This document shows, piece after piece, positions 44,755 to 59,799 of a stretch of 64,000 nt of DNA. Every line of letters starts with the position of its first letter. Within the stretch, counting starts at the first letter, position 1. This DNA is from Bugula neritina. Taxonomy: Eukaryota > Animalia > Bryozoa. The notes beneath the pieces were generated by a model, which saw only the letters and a list, made by a program, of their open reading frames with translations, had not been told where the DNA came from and did no database searches. The position numbers were made by a program, and so were the translations under genes. The DNA lies in contig OZ037767.1 of NCBI GenBank assembly GCA_964035545.1, forward strand, positions 26,490,628 through 26,554,627. Direction: 5' to 3'.

Positions 44755-47700
44755 ATGTCTGGGATACTATTTAACTATTTTGTTGCGTTGCTACAGGTGA
44801 TTCTATTTCATTTAGATGCAGGTAATTGATGCTAGTATAATATATGCATATTTCATATTTATATTGTAAAACTATTAGTTTAAAAATTTTGTATTTAAAG
44901 CTACATTGAAATTAGTGCTTTTTTATTGTAAAAAATGGTGGAAAGTTGTGTCTTCTTAAAACATGTATTTGATTAATAAATATTGGTTCCAGAATATTCC
45001 ACATCCATCAGTGTAAATAAATGACCTTTGTGTCATCATCAATAACATTTAGCAATTTTGATCTGTATAGCTCTAGCTGATGCAAGATCCCATGCAGTAC
45101 TTAGGTCGGCCTTTAACAAGCATAAATATTTAAACTAATTCATAGTTAAAAACTTGTGTTGCTGCTATTGTCACTATTGTAAGATTATTACAAAACTTTG
45201 CCATTGGCCAACTAGTCTTGTACAATCTACTCCTAGGGATGCTTGCATATAATGTGTTTTCTTCTTTATACAGTCAATGGGAGTTGTGTAGCAGAGGCCT
45301 ACAAAGTTAATCATTTCTTTATACGGGCCTGGGACGGTCTGCACATCAAAATAGATAACCGGTACGGTCCAGTGGAGACTGGCCTGGCCAGCTACAACCA
45401 GCAGGAAAATGACAAGTGTATGAGTATAACTAACTAGCCATGTAGTAAATTATTGTTGTACATATACATGTTCAAGATTTAACAAGCTGTTTTTAATTCA
45501 ATTTTTAAAGCTAAAAGCACAACATCTGCTGTTGCTTAATGTTACCTTGTATAAATTTATCCCTTATATGAATGCTGTTGGTGTGTAGTTCTAATGCAAA
45601 AGCAAGCTTGATATACAAAAATATGCTTGTAAATACAATTACAATAGTTATAGCATACGAAATAATTATAATTCTATGAAATTGACTAATATCAATTTGT
45701 GCCATCTTTGTAATTGTCTTATATTTTGTTTTAGTTTTATTCACAACACAGTTTTATGTGTGCGAAACTAACTACGATTTCATGTCAAGCAAAGCCAATC
45801 AGCAAATTAATGGAGTAAAGTTTTACTTAGCCAATACCGGAGGGGGAAGTACTGTAGACGTCCTGGTAAGTTAGACCACCCAAACAGCTGGTAATCTGTT
45901 GCATGATGAGATATTAAACCCTAGAAGACTTACTTTTTGTCTGTGCAAGTACTGAGTAACAAATCAAACCATTTCAGTGCACATGCAGTCGTAAGAATAA
46001 TTTATTAAGCAAGTATTATTTTATGTCTTTGCAAATATTCCTATATAGAAAAAGCATACAAATATGTATGTACATTTTATTACATTGTCGTTTTTAGTAA
46101 ACGTGTGTACTTTTACTTTTGAAATTTTGTACTAGTACTAGTAATTACATAAATCCCAACTTGTATAAGATTATGATCAATGATGTCACAAGTATGTTTA
46201 TTGAGTATAAGGCTTGCTATATCGTTAAGAAGGAGAAATGTTTTTTTCTTACAAAAAACAAAAAAACTTAACTGAAAGCTTCTCTAGAATTTTACATACT
46301 AACAACTTACAGTACAACAGTTTGCGGCTATCAAAATTTATTTGGGGGCTTGAAAGTGTGCTGCTAAGCAAATTTCCATTTGTTAATCTAACTATGAATA
46401 ACAAAGTTTACTTCTTACTTGTTACTACATATAATTCTACATGCATATAGTTAAAGGTTGCAGTCTATATTATATAATCATATAGTTTACATATGTCCTG
46501 TAAATGACTATACACTTTCCAGGAGGTTACCAATGCACCATTTGTAAGCAGCAAAGATGAGAGACTCTTTAGATATTCTGGGGGAGCGAGCATTGAGCTT
46601 CTAAGACTCCGTAAGTTTCTGCATACTAAAAGTTAACAAATTGTTGTTTATATCTGAGTGAACGTTCCATTTCTTTTATTAGAAATTTGCAAAACAGTTT
46701 TTGATAACTTGATTATCAAAATATTTTTGCACTATTTTCAATATTTTCAATATGTTTCATCATATAATTTACAAGCATAGTATAATCTACGCATTATACA
46801 CAATAAAATATAATTATTTATGAACCATATCAAAACCCATATTAATACAGCCATAAAAATAGACATTTAAAATATTTTTTGCAATAAAAGTATAACGAAT
46901 AAATTAATTATAAGAAAACCCAATTTTGTCTTTTGTTCAAACCATTAGAACTTGTCTGATTGTTTACAGAGACCAACACTGATCTGTTTGCTTATGCCAC
47001 CCAAGATCACGCTGTCAAGTTTGGTAAATCTAAATTTTACTGGACGGCATGGCCTTACATTACCAGAGGTGTTGCAAGAACTAAGAGATCTTTGTATGGA
47101 AAGGATCGGCATCTCTCTCAAATTACTGCTTCATTTCAAAGATCTGAAGGTATTCATTCCCCTACCCAATAGTCATGTGAGTTTATAGTCGCTATCCCTG
47201 TGAGAACCCCTGATGGAAAAGGGTTTTTGTTAAAGCGGGCTAACAGCTAGCAATTTATCCATATTTCGCACAGGAGCTATTATGACTGGATGCTCTTTCT
47301 AACATTATCACTGGTGTCTGATCTTAACCACTGACCTATGTTTACTAGGCCAGCACTCTACCCACTGCCAACACTGCTCCTATCTATAATACTATCATTT
47401 GGAAACCCTAGGTTTGACCTTGTCTATAAGGTCAAAATTCAATTACATCTCTACATCTGCTAATGGAATGTATTTTCGCTAAGTCATAATTTCGCATGTA
47501 TTTACAAAAAAAACACAATTGCGAGTATTCAGCAGATAAATAATGTCACAACAAATAACGATATTATGAAATGTTGTTGTAGAGCATCTAATCCCGTATT
47601 TAACCTTTGTTATTTATATCAAGACGTTAATACCATTCTTGTGTACGTGTTGCAGACATTGTAATTCAGCAGACACCAAAGAATGAGATTATAGCAGTTT

Positions 47701-50700
47701 TGAAATCAAAGGTTGACTCAAATTTTCTGTTTAGAAATGGTAAGTACTGAAAGAATATGCTGATCTACTGATACTATATGTTCAGGTGAACTAACTAATA
47801 AACATTGAGTGTACCCATATACTTACTATACGACTATGTATGCTTATAAATAATATATTTTCATGAATAAAAGCCACTCTAGAGCTATGGTTGAAAGTCA
47901 ATGAGTAATTGTCTTAGCAGCCATGGATTTGCAGTATTTTTAATGCAAGGAAAGAGAGTGTTTACTATGTACTGATGTTATTCACATACTTATAATATAT
48001 TATATTGATAGTACACCTCACTCTTAGCTCTGTATTTCCAATATAGCACAGAAATCAAACTTGTACAACTCCTTAAAATGGGTTACTGTTTATGTGGTCA
48101 ACAAGTTTTTTATATTACTCTCAAGAGAGAAAATATTATACCTTACTAAGTGTTGAACTTAAATACTTACAAAATACATAACTTTGGTGCTTTTTCTGAA
48201 ACACCTAATAATACAAATACATACCTCAACAAGGGTCTCTTTTACTACTGTAACTACATATATGCTCATTTGAGTTTTGACAAAGTCAAATTTTGCTATG
48301 AAACTTATAAGCCTATAATAATTAATTTCAGACATCACGAGAGATAATTTTTTTGTTTCTGGAAATCTAATAATTATGACTATTTCTTGCAATAATTTAA
48401 CTATATGTTATTTAAACTATACTCAACAGTTTAGATCATAATTAAAGCTATTAAATTATTTCTTTTATTTTGTGTTTTAGGAAAAAGTTTTGAAATCGTT
48501 GCCTGGAGATTATACAAAGATTTTGATGCTAATGGAGACATAATTATAGGAACAGCAATAGTCATCAGGCAACCCAACCAGGAGGTTTGTATTTAAAGTT
48601 ACTCAGCTTTATTGAATTACGTAATATGTCAATATATTACAACTCCGCTGATAGAGTCTGTACTGGTAATAGAACATTCAATAAAATTATCACCTATTGT
48701 TATATAACTCACCAGCTATTTGGAAAAAAATCGTAAGGGAAATTTTAGTAACAGTAAATGAAGCTTCAGGTCTAATAATTCTACTATATTTTTAGAAGTA
48801 CCTAACATATAACAAAGTGGGTGATGAATTAATTCAGACAACAAGCTATAGATGTCGCCAATGCTCAACAACAAAGCACATTTCTTACCAGCCAGCAATC
48901 CTCAAGGTTGGTTTTCTGAATATTCTCTTGCTAATCTTATACAAGAAATAAAATTCTATGACAACAAGCTATGCAATTTTATTATAGAAATATTACCAGT
49001 AAATTGAATATACCAGGTATTGGTTTTTCATTGTTGGCTGTTTGCCTTAAACAGAAGCAAACTAAAAGTTAACTAGTAGTTTCAGTTAGTTGTATGTAAA
49101 TTAGCTTAATATTCAAACATGTGCTGGCCTATAATTATATTTTATAATCTCACTGTAATTATAGTGTATAGTTATAGTTTATTATAATTGTATTTCTTAT
49201 AATAGGTTATCATATGTGCTTGAGCTTCACAATACATGATAATTCTTGAGCATTGCACTATATATACAACTCAAGACACAGAATTTTTTCATTAATTATG
49301 TGTATTTTTATTATATATTAAATAAAACACATACTTTGCATGAGGAGTTATTTTCCTTTTAGAAATATAATCAAGCTCAAACAAGTAGGAGCTCCAAGAT
49401 TCTCCCAAAAGACATCAATGATCAAAATTTTGTTGATGAGAGGTTCTTGGAAGTCATAAAAAGAAACGATGGGACATTCAGGCTACGTAGCGTTCTTCAA
49501 CCTGGTTCGTATTTAGAAAATATGAAATATAAAAAAGAATGGACATAAAATAATTTAGTGACTAAATTTATGATTATACATGACTATATTCTCAATATGA
49601 AAAGTAAAATTTTAAAAAAGCTTTAATGCATATATGTGCCTAGACAGTGTTAATGTTACTAATGGTTATCTCATTGATGTACATTCTATGTTACAGACTA
49701 CTATCTGGCGGTGTATAAAACAAGGTTCAACAAGTATGAACTGGTTTTCACAAAGTTTCTAAATGACAAAGCTCTAGAATTCAATCTGCAGATTAATATA
49801 CCTGGTAAGATTGAAAAACTACTACCATATGTCTTTTTGAAAAATGTGGTCAGCTTCAATCATATAATTCTACCTGATGGAATTTTTACTTGCAGGTTTA
49901 TTTATAGTTTACGTAAAAGGGACCGCTGTTTAGATTATAAGGTTAGGCAGCTGTTTTGCTACTTGAACTCAAAACTCTACTTGTAACTGCCCTCCTAGTT
50001 TGCTATGAAAGTTCCATACGGGTGTATGTTTTAGTGTAGATAGTTTATTGATTTACACTGTTCACACCATTTACACCTTTTACACCTTTTACACCTTTTA
50101 CACCTTTTACACCGTGAAACTACAATTTTCACAAAACAAAATGATTAAAATATGATAGAATAAGAGCAAATTAAACACAGAAAAGTACATAAAAGAATTT
50201 GATAAATTGCTTGTTTTATAATTATTAAAATATTCAAAGTAACAGTATAAATCAACAAAGTTATAATATATAAAAGCATACCTCTTTCACCCTTTCTAGG
50301 AGAGAGTTAGTAGTATAAAGAAAGCAACATTTTATACCGTGTGTTTGTAAAAATAGCTATAATATTATGTGAGAGTAGATGAGAATGGAACCTTGACGCT
50401 TGAGGGTTCTTACGATAATGTCCTGGCTAAATGTATTTTAACTGTTTTTGTCGGCATGTGTAAAGCTAGTGCACTCAGTTTCTTAGTCATGGTTTTTTGA
50501 GTGCAGCCAGTGCAAAATAAAACTTGCAATGCACCGAGTGATACTAAAATGGTCTTGAAGATAAAAAAAAACAGTGACAAACAAGTGCTAAAGAGTACAC
50601 TAAGGATGGGTGATTCATCGCTGTTGGAATATGTGACAACACAAACGCAGTGTGGCAATGTCGGTAAATGCTAAATTGCTAATTGATATATATTATGACA

Positions 50701-53700
50701 GTTATGAACAAATTGGCAGCAGAGTGTCAGTAAGCAAACTAAATAAAACCAAATTTATGAAATTTTACTATTTATTATAAAGGACACTACACTCCCACCT
50801 AAAATTTCAGAAATTTTTTCAGCAAAGTTTTACTCGTTATCCTTTAAATACATATGTATATATTTTTTAGTTTTCAATTAGTGTCACCAGCTTTGAGACA
50901 GGGCGGTGTAGGTACTTTTTGGAGTTCACAGGCTGGTTTCTATTACCAATTAAAATTTTGGCTGATCGGACTCTACCGTCTTTTGATTTTATACATTCTA
51001 CCACCTTTCCCATAGACCACTCATTTCTATTACCATTGTCATCCACAATAATCACTATGTTTCCGGTCTTCATTTCTCGGCCTGTTTGATTCACCCATTT
51101 CTGGCGAGATTGGAGATAGCACAAATACTCAGTGCGCCAGCGCTGCCAGAAGTTATTTGCCAGATGCTGCACAGCACGCCAGCGCTTGCGGCTGTAAATA
51201 TCACTGTCGGTGAATTCAGATGGAGGTGAAAGAATGATGTCTGACTTCATAGTCAGCAGGAGATTTGGAGTGAGAGGATGATGTTCTTCAGTGACTGTGG
51301 AAAGGGGCCTCGAATTTATGATAGCCATAACCTCATACATGAGGGTTCGGAGGTTACTGGTGTCGAGTCTTCCGGCATGTTTTCTCAGAACGTGCTGAAG
51401 TATGCTTCTAGCTGAACGGATCATCCTTTCCCAGACGCCACCCATGTGACTGGCTGCAGGCGGGTTTAGCTTAAACTCCAGGACACCTTTCTCAGTTAGT
51501 TCAGGAATAGCGCCAATGAAGTTGGTACCCTGGTCACACCAGATTTCTCTAATGGGGCCGCGAATAGCAATTACGTTGCGAATGGCATTTATGAAGGAAG
51601 AAGTAGTCATGTCATCGAGTAGCTCGATGTGGACCGCTCGACTGGCCAAGCAAGTGACCATTAGACCATAACGTTTCAGTTCAGTGCGTCTATCCTTGAC
51701 TTGGAAGGGGCCAAAACAGTCGACTCCACAATAAGTGAAAGGGGGTGACTCTGTAACTCTTTCTGCAGGAAGTGAAGACATATTTGGAATGATTGGCTTA
51801 CCGCGATCACGACGGCAGTCCACACAATGATAGATGAGAGAGGTAACTAGCTGTCTAGCACCTATGACCCAATAACCAGCTGATCTCATTTGAGCTAGGG
51901 TCATTCCACGACCTTGATGCTTAGCCTGGTTATGGAAGTGCTGAAGAAGAAGTTGGGTAAAATGTCCGGCCTTGGGAAGGATGATTGGGTGTTTGTTTGA
52001 GAACTCAATGAATGCGCTATGATCGAGTCTACCTCCAACTCTCATGATACCCTTTGAATCAAGGAATGGGCTGAGATTGAAGATAGGGCTGCTTTGACTG
52101 ATTTTCTTGCCATCTTTCAGGCATTGAGCTTCAGGAAGATGCTCCTGTTGTGCAGATTTGATGATGTATGATTCAGAGGCAGATTTTATATCATAAGAAG
52201 TGCTTTTCATGTGCTTAGAGCGTGCTTTCTGAATGAATAGTCCTGTCACTTTGACAGCTGTCGTCCAGGAGGAAAAGCGATGGAGCAAATGATAAAGTGT
52301 TGGATGGGTGGAGGTATCATGGGTTAAAGTAACAAGTGACTTGACCTCTTTGTCATCATTTCTAACTTGTGGGGTTGGCTGCTCAGGGATTACTATCGGT
52401 TCATTCCAGAGAAAATCTGGTCCCGTGAACCAGTTGGATTTGTTTAGCTGATCAATGGTCAGACCTCTTGAGGCATGGTCAGCAGGGTTCTGGTCTGTTG
52501 GTACGTAAAACCAACTTTCTGGACATGACTGGTCTCTAACCTTTTGGATTCGGTTTGTGACATATACATGGAACTTCTTTGAGGTGTTTTTGAGATAGCC
52601 AAGTACAACTTGAGAATCAGTCCAAAATGTTTCAGTGACATCCATTCCAAGTTCTGACCTAATAATGCCGGATACTTGTGCTGAGGTGACTGCTGCTTGC
52701 AGTTCCATGCGGGGGATTGTGATGGGTTTGATTGGAGCTACTCGACCTTTACTCATGAGCAAGGAAACATTGACTTGGTGCTTGGCATTGACCACTCTCA
52801 AGTAGCTGACTTCACCATAGCCATCTGTACTGGCATCGGAGAAATGATGAATTTCTGCTTTGGAGATATCACCGAAATCATGTGGTTTGTAGCATCTCTT
52901 GATGTGGATGTTGGAGAGATCGGACAGAGAAGATTTCCAGCTCTCCCACCGTAATAACAGTTCACCTTCTAGGGTTGCCTCCCATGAAGCTGAAATTCTA
53001 CACATATCTTGGAGTATATTTTTACCCTTCAAAATGAATGGGGAGAGGAAGCCTAAAGGATCAAATATGGATGCAATGGTAGAGAGAACACCTGAACGAG
53101 TGTTAGGGTTTGACTTGATGGATGAGCTGAATGTGAAAGCATCAGATTTGAGTGACCACAGAAGACCTAGAGTTCTTTCAATGGGTTGAGAATCATCATC
53201 AGGCTCAAGAGTTTGGATGTCTTGCACATTTCTTTCAGAAGCGGGGATAGATTCGAGAACAGCAGATGAGTTAGATGAGAATTTGTGAAGACGTAAATTG
53301 CCTTCTTGGCATATGGATATGGCGTCTTGGACCACACTAATTGCAGAGTCAGTATCAGAGAAACTCATTAAACCATCATCTACATAAAAGTTGTTTCTGA
53401 TGAACGATTTAGCAAGTGTGTTTGGGTTGATGCTAGTGTCACAGAGTGACCGCAAACCGTATGTTGTGCATGCGGGGGATGACGTTGCGCCAAAGAGATG
53501 CACTTTCATTCTGTAAGGAACTATCTCTCCCTGTTCGTCATACCAAAGAAACCTGAGGAGATCTCTATGTTCAGGAAAAACCCGAAACTGATGGAACATT
53601 CTACCAATGTCACAGGTTACTCCTACCAGGTCTTTCCTGAATCTCATCAAAATACCTATCAAGCTATTCATTTGATCAGGACCCTGGAGCAGATAGTCAT

Positions 53701-56700
53701 TGAGACACATCCCTCCCACCTTGGCGGCTCCATCAAAGACAATCCGAATTTTTCCAGGTTTCTTGGGATGGTAAACACCAAAGTGAGGGATGTACCATGC
53801 GCTCTCATTGTTTTTCTGGTCATCTGGAACAAGTTCTGCCTCACCTTGTGTTATGATGTCATTCATAAATTTGTGATAGTGCTCAGAGAAAGTAGGATCA
53901 GTTAAATTTTTTTGAAGATTTTTGAATCGATTGAGTGCCATGTATTTAGATTTGTTTGGACCGGGTTGAGATTTTAGTGGAAGAGGCATAGTGATGTGAC
54001 CTTCTACATCTTTATATGTTTGCTCTTTCATGAGTTTCAAGAAGTTGATGTCATCGATTGACATCTTTGAATTCTCATTTGACGGATCTGAATCAAAGTC
54101 AGAGCTTAGGATCTTAAGGATTTTGGTTTCCAGGTTGGCATCTTCATTGTGGCTGTCTGCCTGTATCTTAAATGAGATATTTTCTCTGGTTGTGGGTTGT
54201 AAGACTGCAAGGTTTACTATCGTAAGCAAATTACGGGGGTTCTTTTGAGTATTATTTTGTGTGGTATTTCCCATGAGTAGCCAACCAAGATCACTCAGCC
54301 TAGCAAATGGCACATTGTCACCAGCAGTAATTTCTTGCCGTGACATGAATACTTGTGGCAGATTGCCACCAATGAGGAGACCGAGAGTGAGCTGGTTGCC
54401 TTCTTTGGCAGTGATGAATTCAGAAGCAAGGTGACGTAGATGGGGCCAGTCCTGTACGGACATGGAATTAGGAATTTCATTGCGATTGAAGGGTATTTGT
54501 GACTGACTTACACAAGTTGGCAGCTTAATATACTTTTGGCTATTGTAGCCGCGGACTAACAGCCCAGTTGCAACTTGTCTGCTGGATGTAGACCCTTGTA
54601 CATCAGTGAGGGTGCTGATACTCATGTCCGTATCATGAGTAGTGGCATTGAGTGCATTAATAGTGTCGTGAGTGATGAACGTGTGATTAGAACCAGAGTC
54701 TAATAGAGCATAGACTAGGACTTCATGGTCAGGATTTTCTATTGATGATACATACACTGGAATGGTCCATGAGGCGAGGTTTGCTGGCCTATTTCCGGCG
54801 CAGTTACGTGCGGTGGCTTGTGTTGGATTATTTTCGTTGCCTTTATTGGAAGTTGAGTTTTGAGTGGAGGACTTATTTTCGCTGCCTCGAATTTGATTGT
54901 TATGTGAAATTTTATTTGGTTGAGAGGTCTTATTTTCGCTGCCTCTATTGTAATACTTATGGAACACAGCAAGATGTTTTTGCTTACAGTCTTTTTTAGT
55001 GCACGTCGCAGGGTGGCGACATTTATCCATTTTGTGTCCCGGCTTTGCACATGAATAACAAAGGTTGTTATTGTCAAATAATTTCTCTATGTCTGAATGA
55101 GGTAATTTTTCAAGTTTGAAACAGATGCCAGTGCCATGGTTGTTCATGTTACACATCAAGCATGGGTACCTACGCATAGGTTTTGTGGTGTCATGTGATA
55201 TGTTAGCTGTTGTAGCTTGATTTTCTGAAGCGAGAAATACTGTTGCCTGCTTTTCGGACTTGCGAGTAGGTTGACTCCGCCTATAGCTGTTATCATGGTT
55301 TCTATTTGATACGACTCTTTTGGCTATGGCTTTGTTTAGACTGTTGCTTGCTACATCAGCCTCTCTAGATAAGAACCGAACAAAATCAAATATTGATGGA
55401 AACCGATCTGTTGTTGATTCTATTTCAGTTGCCATTTTGACCCACCGATTGCCTACCGATATTGGTAACTTTGCGAGAATTTTTTCATTTTCTCTTCGAT
55501 CATTAAGGCAGTTGAGTTCGGGAAGCTTGTTCATGGCGGTTTGGCAGGATTCTAGGAAATTGACTAGTTCCTCCAGTGCCTCTCCGTCATGTTCTTTGAT
55601 AAGGGGCCACTGTTCTAACTGGGTCCGATATGCTTCAGTGAGTATGTGGGGTTTCCCGAATTTATCATTTAGCTTGCGTTTTGCTTCTTTAAATGCTTCT
55701 TCAGTTCCAATTTGGAATAAATTTGCTACTACTCGTTTGGCTTTACCACCTAAATATTGTTGAAGGAGAGCTATCTTTTGGAGGGGATTGTAACTACCAC
55801 TCTCAATGAGACCCTCAAATGCCACCTTCCAATCCAAATATTCGAGGGGTTCACCAAAAAATACAGTGGGCTCGGCAGGTTTTAGTTTGATTGTGTGAAT
55901 AGCTTGTGCTAGTGTGTTAGCAAATGCTTGTTGATCAGAAACGGAGCTGATGTTCCATGGTGGAGTGACGTCTACAGGGCTCCTTGTAGGGTACGAAGTG
56001 GAGTCAGCTGGTGCCTGGTAGAGCTGAGGGTTGGTAATAGGATGTTTAGTCTGAGTCCTAGGTGCAGGTATTGGAGGTATGATAGGGGAAGACTTGGCTG
56101 GATTATCGAGTTCGGCATGTGATTGTGTGAAGTTAGGCTGGGGTAGTGGATGAAAAAGTGAAATACTGCCTTCATCTTCCATAGCCTCAGAAAGAACCTG
56201 TTCTTCAGCTTCAATGGCATCAAGTTCTGCTTGAATTTTGCTTTGCTCTATAGCCATTGCCAATTGTTTGGCCTGCATTTCTAGTGCATGAGTGCTTTTT
56301 GATGACTCAAGTTTCTGTTTGAGAGCTGCAGATTTTGCTTTAGCTTCCAACTGCATAGCTTTAATTTTTGAACTAGCACGGGATGATTTGGAAGCTGAGG
56401 TGAGATGGGATCGAGATTGAATTGAAATGACTGAACCTGATGGGTTACGTGGTTTAGACAGAAAAGCAGCTGATGATGCGCCTGGTTGGTTTGATAAAGC
56501 AGTTTTAGAACGCGTTGTATAGACATGCATCAGCTCTAAGACTTGTTGCAGACAATTTTCATTATCTGCTCCTACGCGGTCAATTTGGTTCCTGACTTTT
56601 AGATCTGGTTCAAGATCGCCACAAGCTTCGCGCAATTGTTCATAGGCCTTGATTACATTGGCCTTCTCTTCAATAAGCTGCGTCTTTAAACCTTCTAAAG

Positions 56701-59700
56701 TCTCAAACGATATCTCTTTATGTGAGGAAAATTCCTTACTTATGAACTGATGAAACACACTGCAGTTTTTTAGTATCTCTTTTAATTTATCTGCCAATAG
56801 TTTGATTTCAATACGTTTAGCATGAGTTGGATTGTCTTCATGTATCTCAACATGTCCTTGTGTGGGTGGAATTTCCTGTTCTAATGTCTCGTAATTTTTG
56901 GCTGACGAATTTTGGTCAAACTGAAAAGTGTCACTAATTGCAGCATTTTCTGATTGAGTATTTTGTTTATACATGGTTGACAAAAAGAAATAGCAAAATG
57001 TGTGAGAATTTAGTGTTGAATATCTTGGCGTGAAAACACAACTCCTAATTAGTTTTTTGAAAATATCGAATTTCTGGTCAGTTGGCTTACTGTCACAAAG
57101 CGCACAATAAATTCAAAGATAGCACGCGTAACCACAGTAGGCAAGGAAAATCGTAGTGCGTTGACTGTTAAATTATTGCTTTGACCTAGTTATTGCCCGG
57201 AATGTAAACGCAGCACGCTGTGTTGTCACTATTACAACAGCGATGTTACAGTAATAAAGAGATAGAACAAATGAAAATAAAGATGCTCACTAATAGTAAT
57301 TGTGATATGTGAATGAAAAGTTATAATTAGCTTGAGAGCTATGTAAAATTTGGTAGCTATGTAGTACAAGAAGTAAATTGTGGTTCACTAGGACAATGTG
57401 TCAATTGGGTAAAAACTTATACAGTATAGATATAATTAAACTTATCGCTCTGGAGTCTTGTTGGCTGCTGGCTCTGGCTCTTGGCTCTGGCTTTGTAGCT
57501 CTGGCTCTTGGCTGACTGGCGCTGGCTCGGTACGACTGTATAGGCTGATAGTTTGGCTATCGTTCGACTGCTGGTCAGTTTTCCCGGAGACTGTATGCCT
57601 GATTTGGGTGAATTGTGGGTTGAGTTGTTTAACTTGGGTTTGGTGTGCTTGTGCTTATCGTAAGTGATGAATGAGAATTTACTCTGTGCATGAGGATAGA
57701 AGCATTTCACATTAGAGTATTACGTGCTGTTTTGGATTAAAGTTGTGGGAGCTTGATGTAAAGTGGAAAATCAAGGTTCAATCATTTGAGTGTAAGTAGG
57801 TTACAGTTTCGCTTGTCAGCAGCAAGTGGGAAGTTTTACTTGCTGTCTTAGGTTAAAGTTCCACTTCGTGAGAGCTAAGAGTCTAACACTTGTCAAAGGC
57901 AAGTGGGAAGAGTTTCACTGTAACTGCCCTCCTAGTTTGCTATGAAAGTTCCATACGGGTGTATGTTTTAGTGTAGATAGTTTATTGATTTACACTGTTC
58001 ACACCATTTACACCTTTTACACCTTTTACACCTTTTACACCTTTTACACCGTGAAACTACAATTTTCACAAAACAAAATGATTAAAATATGATAGAATAA
58101 GAGCAAATTAAACACAGAAAAGTACATAAAAGAATTTGATAAATTGCTTGTTTTATAATTATTAAAATATTCAAAGTAACAGTATAAATCAACAAAGTTA
58201 TAATATATAAAAGCATACCTCTTTCACCCTTTCTAGGAGAGAGTTAGTAGTATAAAGAAAGCAACATTTTATACCGTGTGTTTGTAAAAATAGCTATAAT
58301 ATTATGTGAGAGTAGATGAGAATGGAACCTTGACGCTTGAGGGTTCTTACGATAATGTCCTGGCTAAATGTATTTTAACTGTTTTTGTCGGCATGTGTAA
58401 AGCTAGTGCACTCAGTTTCTTAGTCATGGTTTTTTGAGTGCAGCCAGTGCAAAATAAAACTTGCAATGCACCGAGTGATACTAAAATGGTCTTGAAGATA
58501 AAAAAAAACAGTGACAAACAAGTGCTAAAGAGTACACTAAGGATGGGTGATTCATCGCTGTTGGAATATGTGACAACACAAACGCAGTGTGGCAATGTCG
58601 GTAAATGCTAAATTGCTAATTGATATATATTATGACAGTTATGAACAAATTGGCAGCAGAGTGTCAGTAAGCAAACTAAATAAAACCAAATTTATGAAAT
58701 TTTACTATTTATTATAAAGGACACTACACTACTCAAGTACAGCTTCTTTGCACTAATGAGAGTATCTTTAGTTGCTAGCACCAAAGTATATATTAGGAAA
58801 AAAAATTTGAATGTAATGCTTTAATTCAATTTGGTGCAGCACCAAGTGAATTGATTTTGAAACTATAGTTTTACAATACACCCCAATAAACATCAAAGTC
58901 AGACTAGATGGCATTCAAAATTGATTGAATTGTTTTTTTATGCAGTAACTACTAATATTTACAAAGCCACCATTGCATATTTAATAGATGGATGAGACTG
59001 ATAATTTGTAAATCAATTTCATGGTTTTGCAGATGTTCCAGAGCATTTAGCCAAGCTACCCAAGCTGCCTTGTGAAGGTGATACACTAAAAAGACGAGGT
59101 CATCAAAAATCGCTGTTTACATGTTTAGATGATGTTGACAATGATGTCGGAGAAACGCTGACAGCAAACTCAGAGTATGGGTCAGCTCCAAGTAGACCAA
59201 TACCAGAATCAGGACCAATAGATCTCTCGTCTGCGCCGATTTCCTCATACTGGAAACCAAAACAGGACACGGAAGACGTGCCTCTCTTGACTACTAGTAA
59301 CCATCAAAATACAAGACGAAGTGTAAGCGCTGGGAATTCATTTAATAACAATTATGGCCACTCACTTAGTGATCTGTTGGTAACAAGAGGTCGCAAATCC
59401 AAGAATCTTGATAACTCAAGTCCTACACGCAAGTCAGGTCACAGGACACAACCCAACAGTCAGCCAAATACAGAGGAGGAACATAGCAAACCAAAGTGCA
59501 TGAAACATAAACATCGCTCAAGTTGTAAGAAAGCACCACACAGTGGAAATAATTCATCAAACAGAGACAATGACTCTACAACTCCCAAAGTCACAAGAAA
59601 AAAAGATAAAACAACTCCTCGGCCCATTATATCTACAACTACTACAAAAAGTACTACAACTCGAAAGCATCATCATTCGAGAGAAAGTTCAAGTCATGAG

Positions 59701-59799
59701 CATGGGCATAGCCATTGGCGAGGTTCAAGTCACAGACCTTCTAGTACAAGGAGTCATCCAAGTTCAGGAAGTCATAACAACGGAGGAGGACACTATTAG
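44755..59799 (+). CDS. Secreted protein (about 604 aa): signal peptide, two FGF/IL-1-like beta-trefoil-type repeats separated by RTKR, and a basic Ser/Thr/His-rich tail; exons 44755-44821, 45274-45417, 45735-45865, 46523-46610, 46970-47149, 47656-47739, 48481-48584, 49363-49504, 49697-49804, 59033-59799
   Basis: Ten GT-AG exons in a continuous frame (1815 nt). Signal MSGILFNYFVALLQVILFHLDAVNG. Repeated motif DERLFRY...LLRLQTNTDLFAY and DERFLEV...FRLRSVLQPDYYLAV. AATAAA at 59856. The fold assignment is inference from motif resemblance. Confidence 0.75.
47196..47380 (-). mobile_element. Degenerate tRNA-derived SINE in an intron
   Basis: The minus strand starts GGAGCAGTGTTGGCAGTGGGTAGAGTGCTGGCCT (A-box-like) ... 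GGTTAAGATC (degenerate B-box), followed by AGAAAGAGCATCCAGT. Confidence 0.45.
49982..50791 (-). repeat. 3' LTR
   Basis: Direct repeat of 57919-58728 with no difference found by eye. Contains (TTTTACACC)x4 and a minus-strand AATAAA near its 3' end. Confidence 0.97.
50792..50800 (-). other. Polypurine tract of the retrotransposon
   Basis: Minus-strand AGGTGGGAG abuts the TG of the 3' LTR. Confidence 0.85.
50867..56983 (-). CDS. BEL/Pao Gag-Pol polyprotein (2038 aa): Gag zinc knuckles, aspartic protease, RT, RNase H, integrase
   Basis: Triple knuckle CLMC..H..C / CYSCAKPGHKMDKC / CTKKDCKQKH; protease ALLDSGS; RT NFYVDD; RNase H HHFSDAS; integrase H..H..CVDC, DCFGPF, DQGTNF, GGVWERMI. Uninterrupted ORF. 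Confidence 0.97.
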   Translation of the reverse strand: MSTMYKQNTQSENAAISDTFQFDQNSSAKNYETLEQEIPPTQGHVEIHEDNPTHAKRIEIKLLADKLKEILKNCSVFHQFISKEFSSHKEISFETLEGLKTQLIEEKANVIKAYEQLREACGDLEPDLKVRNQIDRVGADNENCLQQVLELMHVYTTRSKTALSNQPGASSAAFLSKPRNPSGSVISIQSRSHLTSASKSSRASSKIKAMQLEAKAKSAALKQKLESSKSTHALEMQAKQLAMAIEQSKIQAELDAIEAEEQVLSEAMEDEGSISLFHPLPQPNFTQSHAELDNPAKSSPIIPPIPAPRTQTKHPITNPQLYQAPADSTSYPTRSPVDVTPPWNISSVSDQQAFANTLAQAIHTIKLKPAEPTVFFGEPLEYLDWKVAFEGLIESGSYNPLQKIALLQQYLGGKAKRVVANLFQIGTEEAFKEAKRKLNDKFGKPHILTEAYRTQLEQWPLIKEHDGEALEELVNFLESCQTAMNKLPELNCLNDRRENEKILAKLPISVGNRWVKMATEIESTTDRFPSIFDFVRFLSREADVASNSLNKAIAKRVVSNRNHDNSYRRSQPTRKSEKQATVFLASENQATTANISHDTTKPMRRYPCLMCNMNNHGTGICFKLEKLPHSDIEKLFDNNNLCYSCAKPGHKMDKCRHPATCTKKDCKQKHLAVFHKYYNRGSENKTSQPNKISHNNQIRGSENKSSTQNSTSNKGNENNPTQATARNCAGNRPANLASWTIPVYVSSIENPDHEVLVYALLDSGSNHTFITHDTINALNATTHDTDMSISTLTDVQGSTSSRQVATGLLVRGYNSQKYIKLPTCVSQSQIPFNRNEIPNSMSVQDWPHLRHLASEFITAKEGNQLTLGLLIGGNLPQVFMSRQEITAGDNVPFARLSDLGWLLMGNTTQNNTQKNPRNLLTIVNLAVLQPTTRENISFKIQADSHNEDANLETKILKILSSDFDSDPSNENSKMSIDDINFLKLMKEQTYKDVEGHITMPLPLKSQPGPNKSKYMALNRFKNLQKNLTDPTFSEHYHKFMNDIITQGEAELVPDDQKNNESAWYIPHFGVYHPKKPGKIRIVFDGAAKVGGMCLNDYLLQGPDQMNSLIGILMRFRKDLVGVTCDIGRMFHQFRVFPEHRDLLRFLWYDEQGEIVPYRMKVHLFGATSSPACTTYGLRSLCDTSINPNTLAKSFIRNNFYVDDGLMSFSDTDSAISVVQDAISICQEGNLRLHKFSSNSSAVLESIPASERNVQDIQTLEPDDDSQPIERTLGLLWSLKSDAFTFSSSIKSNPNTRSGVLSTIASIFDPLGFLSPFILKGKNILQDMCRISASWEATLEGELLLRWESWKSSLSDLSNIHIKRCYKPHDFGDISKAEIHHFSDASTDGYGEVSYLRVVNAKHQVNVSLLMSKGRVAPIKPITIPRMELQAAVTSAQVSGIIRSELGMDVTETFWTDSQVVLGYLKNTSKKFHVYVTNRIQKVRDQSCPESWFYVPTDQNPADHASRGLTIDQLNKSNWFTGPDFLWNEPIVIPEQPTPQVRNDDKEVKSLVTLTHDTSTHPTLYHLLHRFSSWTTAVKVTGLFIQKARSKHMKSTSYDIKSASESYIIKSAQQEHLPEAQCLKDGKKISQSSPIFNLSPFLDSKGIMRVGGRLDHSAFIEFSNKHPIILPKAGHFTQLLLQHFHNQAKHQGRGMTLAQMRSAGYWVIGARQLVTSLIYHCVDCRRDRGKPIIPNMSSLPAERVTESPPFTYCGVDCFGPFQVKDRRTELKRYGLMVTCLASRAVHIELLDDMTTSSFINAIRNVIAIRGPIREIWCDQGTNFIGAIPELTEKGVLEFKLNPPAASHMGGVWERMIRSARSILQHVLRKHAGRLDTSNLRTLMYEVMAIINSRPLSTVTEEHHPLTPNLLLTMKSDIILSPPSEFTDSDIYSRKRWRAVQHLANNFWQRWRTEYLCYLQSRQKWVNQTGREMKTGNIVIIVDDNGNRNEWSMGKVVECIKSKDGRVRSAKILIGNRNQPVNSKKYLHRPVSKLVTLIEN
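57919..58728 (-). repeat. 5' LTR
   Basis: Direct repeat of 49982-50791, upstream of the ORF on the minus strand. Confidence 0.97.

Follow-up and report, generated by a model that had tools for sequence, protein, structure and literature searches.

A selected gene of Bugula neritina predicted to encode a secreted protein with two probable beta-trefoil domains

Tandem trefoils are common among lectins. Long tails of low complexity occur in the Drosophila FGFs Branchless, Pyramus and Thisbe, the first of which is cleaved by furin. In the IL-1 superfamily, a trefoil has three to five coding exons, and an (F/L)ES motif in strand 9 has served to recognise IL-1anc proteins of invertebrates (Fontenla-Iglesias et al. 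2026, PMC13736523). Most IL-1anc proteins have a PDZ domain at the N-terminus and lack a signal peptide, members secreted by means of a signal peptide exist in IL-1Ra and lamprey IL-1.1, and bryozoans are not mentioned (PMC13736523). The gene described here lies in a 64,000-nucleotide stretch of AT-rich animal DNA (the window), part of contig C3 in an assembly of the bryozoan Bugula neritina that totals 216 Mb. It occupies positions 44755-59799 of the plus strand and its product has 641 residues. It is a real gene under selection, which belongs to a family found only in bryozoans. On balance, its product is read as a secreted protein that would consist of two probable beta-trefoils, a furin-type cut site between them and a disordered tail.

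Gene structure and selection

The complete gene has 11 coding exons (Table 1). A preliminary description of the window had proposed a spliced open reading frame of ten exons. All ten were recovered, with GT-AG introns and an open frame of 604 residues, but the model was incomplete, as exon 7b had been overlooked. The signal-like N-terminus, the linker VARTKR/SL (stroke at the proposed cut), both domain sequences, the KRR triplet and the low-complexity tail were found as described there. The nearest database protein was P0017, a GenBank hypothetical protein of Bugula neritina (EB796_000843, 615 residues), which was 93% identical over the first 484 residues with no gaps. P0017 has the exons of the preliminary description and one additional exon between exons 7 and 8; counterparts of this exon 7b were present in P0017, in segments of the paralogs B1 and B2 described below and in proteins of Watersipora. 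Two donors had been considered for exon 5. The donor at 47149 is the productive one, because use of 47024 leaves a 55-nt exon, breaks the frame and removes WPYITR, which is kept in all relatives and common to the whole family; the donor at 47024 was rejected on these grounds. The N-terminal leader had a best 12-residue Kyte-Doolittle mean of 2.4, and the Watersipora relatives likewise begin with hydrophobic leaders. From this leader, the product is predicted to enter the secretory pathway.

The orthologous locus of a second Bugula neritina assembly, on the contig that encodes P0017 (L015; GCA_010799875.2, VXIV02000096.1:164286-176184), was compared with positions 42140-62839 of the window. DNA identity was only 83-92%, so that the two assemblies are informative on selection. 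Exons were 88-96% identical to the ortholog, exons 1-9 were free of indels and every splice dinucleotide was kept. Introns were 73-91% identical, with indels in all of them except 49505-49696. Mismatches at codon positions 1, 2 and 3 numbered 25, 23 and 76, and exons 7b, 8 and 9 differed at third positions only. The ratio of nonsynonymous to synonymous substitution (dN/dS, Nei-Gojobori) was 0.18 for the gene, 0.15 for domain 1, 0.08 for domain 2, 0 for the C-terminal cysteine motif, 0.35 for the linker and 0.27 for the tail, with dS at about 0.2. The reading frame is far beyond chance and the gene is under purifying selection. A dS of about 0.2 and a DNA identity of 83-92% are also much above the usual within-species divergence and fit a cryptic-species complex. 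Bugula neritina is known as such a complex, and the source of the gene is Bugula neritina or a sibling species within it.

In exon 10, the frame ran without interruption to a shared stop in the two assemblies, with indels of 6 and 3 nt and mismatches of 11, 12 and 29 at the three codon positions, and the conserved tail frame ends in ...GGHY in both. After residue 484, the frame of P0017 hits a stop in the window, and the third-position bias lies in the other frame; the tail frame of P0017 was rejected. The tail given in the preliminary description is correct and the GenBank tail is not, because the GenBank frame is interrupted, whereas the other is open in both assemblies and biased to third positions. 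The C-terminus of EB796_000843 (residues 485-615, against 59330-59799 of the window) is wrong: an invented intron after ...NTRRSV shifts the frame.

Table 1. Features of the gene and its last intron, in coordinates of the window.
Feature	Position	Strand	Description
Exon 1	44755..44821	+	ATG at 44755, GTAATT donor; residues 1-22, hydrophobic signal-like N-terminus; P0017 starts at the same ATG
Exon 2	45274..45417	+	Start of domain 1; conserved G-x-C, NGS sequon; AG/GT, phase 1-1; homologous exons in B1 and B2; ortholog 92%, gap-free
Exon 3	45735..45865	+	Domain 1; conserved FY-x-C, YLAN; phase 1-0; matches paralogs A, B1 and B2; ortholog 96%
Exon 4	46523..46610	+	Domain 1; DERLFRY; phase 0-1; matches paralogs; ortholog 94%
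Exon 5	46970..47149	+	End of domain 1 (WPYITR, kept in all paralogs) and inter-domain linker; phase 1-1
RTKR codons	47077..47088	+	Residues 180-183; sole R-x-[KR]-R of the protein (regular expression on the model)
Exon 6	47656..47739	+	Start of domain 2; phase 1-1; ortholog 95%, gap-free
Exon 7	48481..48584	+	Domain 2, FEIVAW...NGDIIIGTAIVIR; phase 1-0; paralogs 45-61% identical
Exon 7b	48796..48906	+	Middle of domain 2, 37 residues, 111 nt; AG/GT, phase 0-0; ortholog mismatches by codon position 0/0/5
Exon 8	49363..49504	+	Domain 2, VDERFLEV...FRLRSVLQP; best-conserved exon of the family; ortholog mismatches 0/0/5
Exon 9	49697..49804	+	End of domain 2, YYLAV...YELVFT...LEFNLQ; phase 1-1; matches paralogs; ortholog mismatches 0/0/7
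BEL/Pao-type long terminal repeat (LTR) retrotransposon	49982..58728	-	In last intron, antisense to the gene and outside its product; uninterrupted open reading frame of 2038 residues
Exon 10 (eleventh coding exon)	59033..59799	+	LPKLPC...LF-x-C motif, S/T/H/K/R-rich tail of 220 residues, stop codon

Family members, linker and tail

Searches were made with single exons, full-length work was done on P0017 and other database relatives, and the statements on fold concern P0017 and the relatives from Watersipora. A search of the genome with exon 8 gave three further loci, all on contig C6, and an exon-by-exon comparison showed that these paralogs, A, B1 and B2, share their exon order with the gene. 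The pair B1/B2 also has the same exon phases, both domains, exon 7b, WPYITR and DERFFE and the C-terminal cysteine motif, and is 43-56% identical to the gene in the best exon. Unlike the gene, the pair has no RTKR in the linker, and its proteins terminate directly behind the cysteine motif and are without a long tail. One member of the pair is represented in GenBank by an incomplete model, EB796_015548. Between the parts that resemble exons 3 and 4, paralog A (C6:8790492-8791216; loci L011/L008) contains a long GA-rich microsatellite, read in frame as (ER)n, and no equivalent of exon 2, 6 or 7b was found in it; this copy may be decaying or may merely be more diverged.

A profile of exon 8 was compared with 1.84 billion representative proteins and gave 13 matches, with E values reaching 5e-24 to 1e-10. 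Those with a name came only from Bugula neritina or Watersipora subatra and the others were unnamed short fragments, so that this search returned no named relative outside bryozoans. In a word-index protein search, the query P0007 returned only itself and a mixed-alignment query returned P0017. Watersipora subatra has at least three relatives. The plan of P0007 (420 residues) and P0013 (415 residues), which are 24% identical to each other, is a leader, domain 1, a linker, domain 2 and a C-terminal motif; P0012 and P0013 have a short His-rich end. Five proteins (P0017, P0001, P0007, P0012 and P0013) were all found to have the leader, a domain 1 ending in W/L-P-Y-[IV]-T and the C-terminal cysteine motif, together with a domain 2 containing VDERFFE and YLAV motifs and the exon phases common to the family. 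Profiles of domains 1 and 2 were unrelated to an array of single-domain trefoil-like genes 1.19 Mb upstream (best E 0.11), and a literature search on Bugula and trefoil found no paper. To judge from the sequences retrieved, this is an unnamed family, so far seen only in cheilostome bryozoans.

The phases of the exons are 1-1, 1-0, 0-1 and 1-1 in domain 1, and 1-1, 1-0, (0-0), 0-1 and 1-1 in domain 2. In both domains, the 0-1 exon carries the DER[LF] motif, and the exon that follows it begins just ahead of a hydrophobic strand (LFAYA and YYLAV, respectively). The two domains, which are divergent and of about 150-185 residues, are probably the result of a tandem duplication, in which the unit copied had four exons and was bounded by phase 1 introns. 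Self-comparison of the protein gave only a weak internal repeat, which was not significant (E 0.07).

The preliminary description had placed a furin site in the linker. An RTKR consensus does lie between the two domains, and the ortholog retains it (GVPRTKRSL) in spite of the linker being the fastest-evolving part (omega 0.35). As a property of the family, the site did not hold. RTKR was absent from paralogs A, B1 and B2, with no basic site after their WPYITR; in Watersipora, the linker of P0007 has RKTR and that of P0013 has no R-x-x-R. Convertase P-domains are encoded at several loci of the Bugula genome, and hence an enzyme for the RTKR cut exists.

The preliminary description had given KRR and a polybasic tail of roughly 250 residues, rich in K/R/H/S/T, at the C-terminus. 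This needs to be modified in two respects. Its first 35 residues belong to a motif with two cysteines (LPKLPC...LF-x-C), which is conserved in B1 and B2; the KRR triplet sits between the two conserved cysteines and is itself not conserved. The remaining 220 residues are indeed of low complexity and rich in S/T/N/H/P (29% Ser+Thr, 8% His), but they are moderately and not strongly basic, with 33 K+R against 19 D+E.

Fold and competing interpretations

Models of the two domains were obtained with AlphaFold from shallow per-domain alignments of the relatives. When the model of domain 2 was aligned exhaustively with 48,161 solved chains, the best 50 rows were all beta-trefoils. The top match was IL-1alpha (Z 7.0, root mean square deviation 3.2 A, 102 residues), followed by IL-1Ra (6.4), IL-33 (6.3), IL-36gamma (5.8), IL-37 (5.7), IL-1beta (5.6), FGF8 (5.5) and FGF12 (5.3), and the lower rows (ranks 9-50) included ricin-type modules, HA33, CDT, fascin and Kunitz inhibitors. 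When the same model was used for a shape search of the Atlas, mostly trefoil families were matched, at low template modelling (TM) scores. The ESM Atlas feature neighbours of P0007 (0.90) and P0013 (0.84) were all trefoil families, namely RicinB_lectin_2 salivary peptides, CDT subunits and ricin lectins. Among the ESM Atlas models, residues 20-164 of P0007 (domain 1) matched IL-18 with a TM score of 0.63, and residues 176-369 of P0013 (domain 2) matched a ricin-type domain with a TM score of 0.57. The beta-trefoils of the preliminary description are thereby retained for domain 2, which is probably a trefoil, with models that argue for it moderately. For domain 1, whose AlphaFold model was uninformative, the models point only weakly in the same direction, and a trefoil is somewhat favoured.

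Several observations weigh against a cleaved tandem trefoil. Confidence in the AlphaFold models was low, the predicted local distance difference test score (pLDDT) being 40 for domain 2 and 45 for domain 1. All Z values were below 8, a range which is common according to the tool's own note, and the weight of the structure search therefore lies in the uniformity of its list. The AlphaFold model of domain 1 gave only mixed beta-sandwich matches in the exhaustive alignment, and Foldseek against the PDB was uninformative. The ESM Atlas models had pLDDT values of 0.38-0.45 and their TM scores were mostly below 0.5. The best profile-profile alignment of domain 1 with domain 2 pairs precisely the segments formed by the DER[LF] exon and the exon after it, at an E value (0.33) which is not significant. 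Finally, RTKR and the long tail are not family-wide, and processing may be incidental.

No named family was reached by sequence. Single exons gave only chance-level Pfam matches, four full-length relatives (P0007, P0013, P0012 and P0001) gave none, and searches of PDB sequences, made with profiles and also with single segments of the third repeat, returned nothing relevant. The membership of the FGF or IL-1 families that had been proposed for the protein was consequently not upheld, as the Pfam FGF and IL1 models miss the gene, its exons and its relatives and the PDB sequence searches were empty.

The alternative that survives best, although still an unlikely one, is a tandem trefoil of the ricin-B, CDT or HA33 type, with a role in carbohydrate binding or defence, which is not cut and in which RTKR is incidental. 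Ricin-B-type lectins and toxin B subunits (PF00652, PF14200, CDtoxinA, botulinum HA33) are secreted tandem trefoils with many structural matches to the domain 2 model, including the ricin-type modules and the natural double trefoil HA33 at ranks 9-50, and they form the nearest language-model clusters of both Watersipora relatives. With these clusters nearer to ricin-B than to cytokines, a ricin-B-type match, named in the preliminary description as refuting it, is neither established nor set aside. The paralogs without a furin site would also fit such a protein. The feature scores of 0.84-0.90 are, however, sometimes reached by shuffled proteins, as the tool itself notes, and the structural Z values of these lectins were below those of the IL-1 members. 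The Q-x-W repeat was absent from all six family proteins, and the Pfam ricin-B models missed the gene. PF00652 and PF14200 gave no match in the relatives, and in the genome scan, made with PF14200 alone of the two, matches were found on other contigs only. Moreover, RTKR has survived a dS of about 0.2 although the linker around it evolves fast. Matches to RicinB_lectin_2 on the small contigs C190, C236, C262 and C57 carry in-frame stops, and these may be degenerate copies or non-host DNA.

A true cytokine precursor of the IL-1/FGF superfamily, conventionally secreted and cut by furin into two receptor ligands, with a tail that binds heparan sulfate, is considered improbable. The six best matches of the domain 2 model were all of the IL-1 family (Z 7.0-5.6), with FGF8 and FGF12 next, and the Atlas models matched IL-18 and IL-1 clusters; the margin of IL-1 over FGF and lectins was 1-2 Z units on a low-confidence model. 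A motif resembling the IL-1 signature, [FL]-x-[ST]-x-x-x-P-x-x-[YF]-[LV]-A, was present at the same place of domain 2 in all six family proteins, in a predicted strand (FRLRS) that corresponds to strand 9. The residues equivalent to (F/L)ES are LRS, FRS, LVS or LAT, and the central E is not kept. This pattern was relaxed post hoc from the IL-1 signature, and the low-depth model may have been steered by that very motif. The motif is flanked by a phase 0 intron before exon 8 and a phase 1 intron four codons past its Ser. Each trefoil here has four or five exons, which is similar to IL-1, and secretion by a signal peptide has a precedent in IL-1Ra and lamprey IL-1.1 (PMC13736523).

The differences from the IL-1 superfamily are considerable. 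Pfam IL1 (PF00340) had no match in the exons, the relatives or the whole genome, where it matched nowhere and is thus weakly informative, and Pfam found no PDZ domain in the relatives. The trefoil-like domains here are in tandem, a classical leader is the rule of the family, whereas in IL-1 a signal peptide directs the secretion of a few members, the site in the linker is of the furin and not the caspase type, and no sequence relative beyond bryozoans was found. The language-model features are also nearer to the ricin-B and CDT families. Nor was the two-ligand polyprotein of the preliminary description a property of the family, since all three paralogs are without RTKR and B1/B2 are without the long tail; for the present copy, it survives as a minority reading. 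A bryozoan branch of IL-1, in which PDZ was lost, a signal peptide gained and the trefoil duplicated in tandem, with furin processing and a matrix-binding tail in this paralog, is quite doubtful; if true, a lophotrochozoan would possess an IL-1-like cytokine of the polyprotein type with conventional secretion.

The FGF half of this alternative has similar difficulties. FGFs are secreted trefoil ligands, and FGF8, FGF12, FGF4, FGF18 and FGF10 matched the domain 2 model with Z 5.5-5.1 (5.5-5.2 over 89-99 residues for the first three, on a model with a pLDDT of 40). FGFs have a single core of about 120 residues, in contrast to the two domains found here, and no FGF sequence signature was seen. 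Pfam FGF (PF00167) missed the gene and its paralogs, with no match in the exons or in P0007, P0013, P0012 and P0001, and in the genome scan it matched at C7:15.494-15.496 Mb only. That locus (C7:15494185-15495650) is a canonical FGF gene, in which positions 43-69 and 67-117 of PF00167 are matched by two exons, both above the cut-off. Recovery of this gene shows that the FGF scan works, and the bryozoan thus has an ordinary FGF besides the double-domain family.

That the domains have some other all-beta fold, with the trefoil matches as artefacts of poor models, is put at a similarly low probability. The low pLDDT values (40-45 for AlphaFold, 0.38-0.45 for the Atlas models), the TM scores and the unrelated beta-sandwiches matched by the model of domain 1 would fit this view. 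On the other hand, all of the best 50 among the 48,161 chains were trefoils for domain 2, and another predictor arrived at that fold family for two proteins with only 24% identity.

A mis-joined or decaying gene, with a foreign exon 10 or a pseudogene disrupted by a retrotransposon, is very improbable in spite of the 9.2-kb last intron holding an 8.7-kb element and of the GenBank model reading another tail frame. B1/B2 share the exon order and retain the LPKLPC...LF-x-C segment with which exon 10 opens, dN/dS is 0 for this motif and 0.27 for the tail, and the element is intronic, antisense and absent from the ortholog. The pseudogene was rejected on the dN/dS of 0.18 for the gene. The ends of the retrotransposon are an identical run of 812 nt, with copies at 49982-50793 and 57919-58730, and the LTRs are read as about 810 nt; CTACT, a target duplication of 5 bp, flanks the element. 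The site is empty at L015, where the same exons are 5.9 kb apart, and the insertion is therefore young or lineage-specific.

Proposed function and significance

The protein could be an extracellular binding module. A furin-like convertase would cut RTKR in the exposed linker of this paralog, and domain 1 would thereby be freed from domain 2 and the tail. The tail, which is probably O-glycosylated and is rich in His, may then anchor the C-terminal half on matrix or cuticle.

On the practical side, the C-terminal frame of EB796_000843 needs correcting, and the earlier ten-exon model was short of one exon. If the fold holds, bryozoans own an uncharacterised family of secreted tandem-trefoil proteins which is not linked by sequence to any named family, and this would add to the finding of an age and a diversity of IL-1-like trefoils far beyond what sequence searches had indicated (PMC13736523). 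The paralog described here would be a natural experiment. It alone has gained a convertase site and a long tail, and both have been kept over about 20% silent-site divergence between two genomes. The effect of cleavage and tethering on a trefoil module would be directly testable in this paralog.

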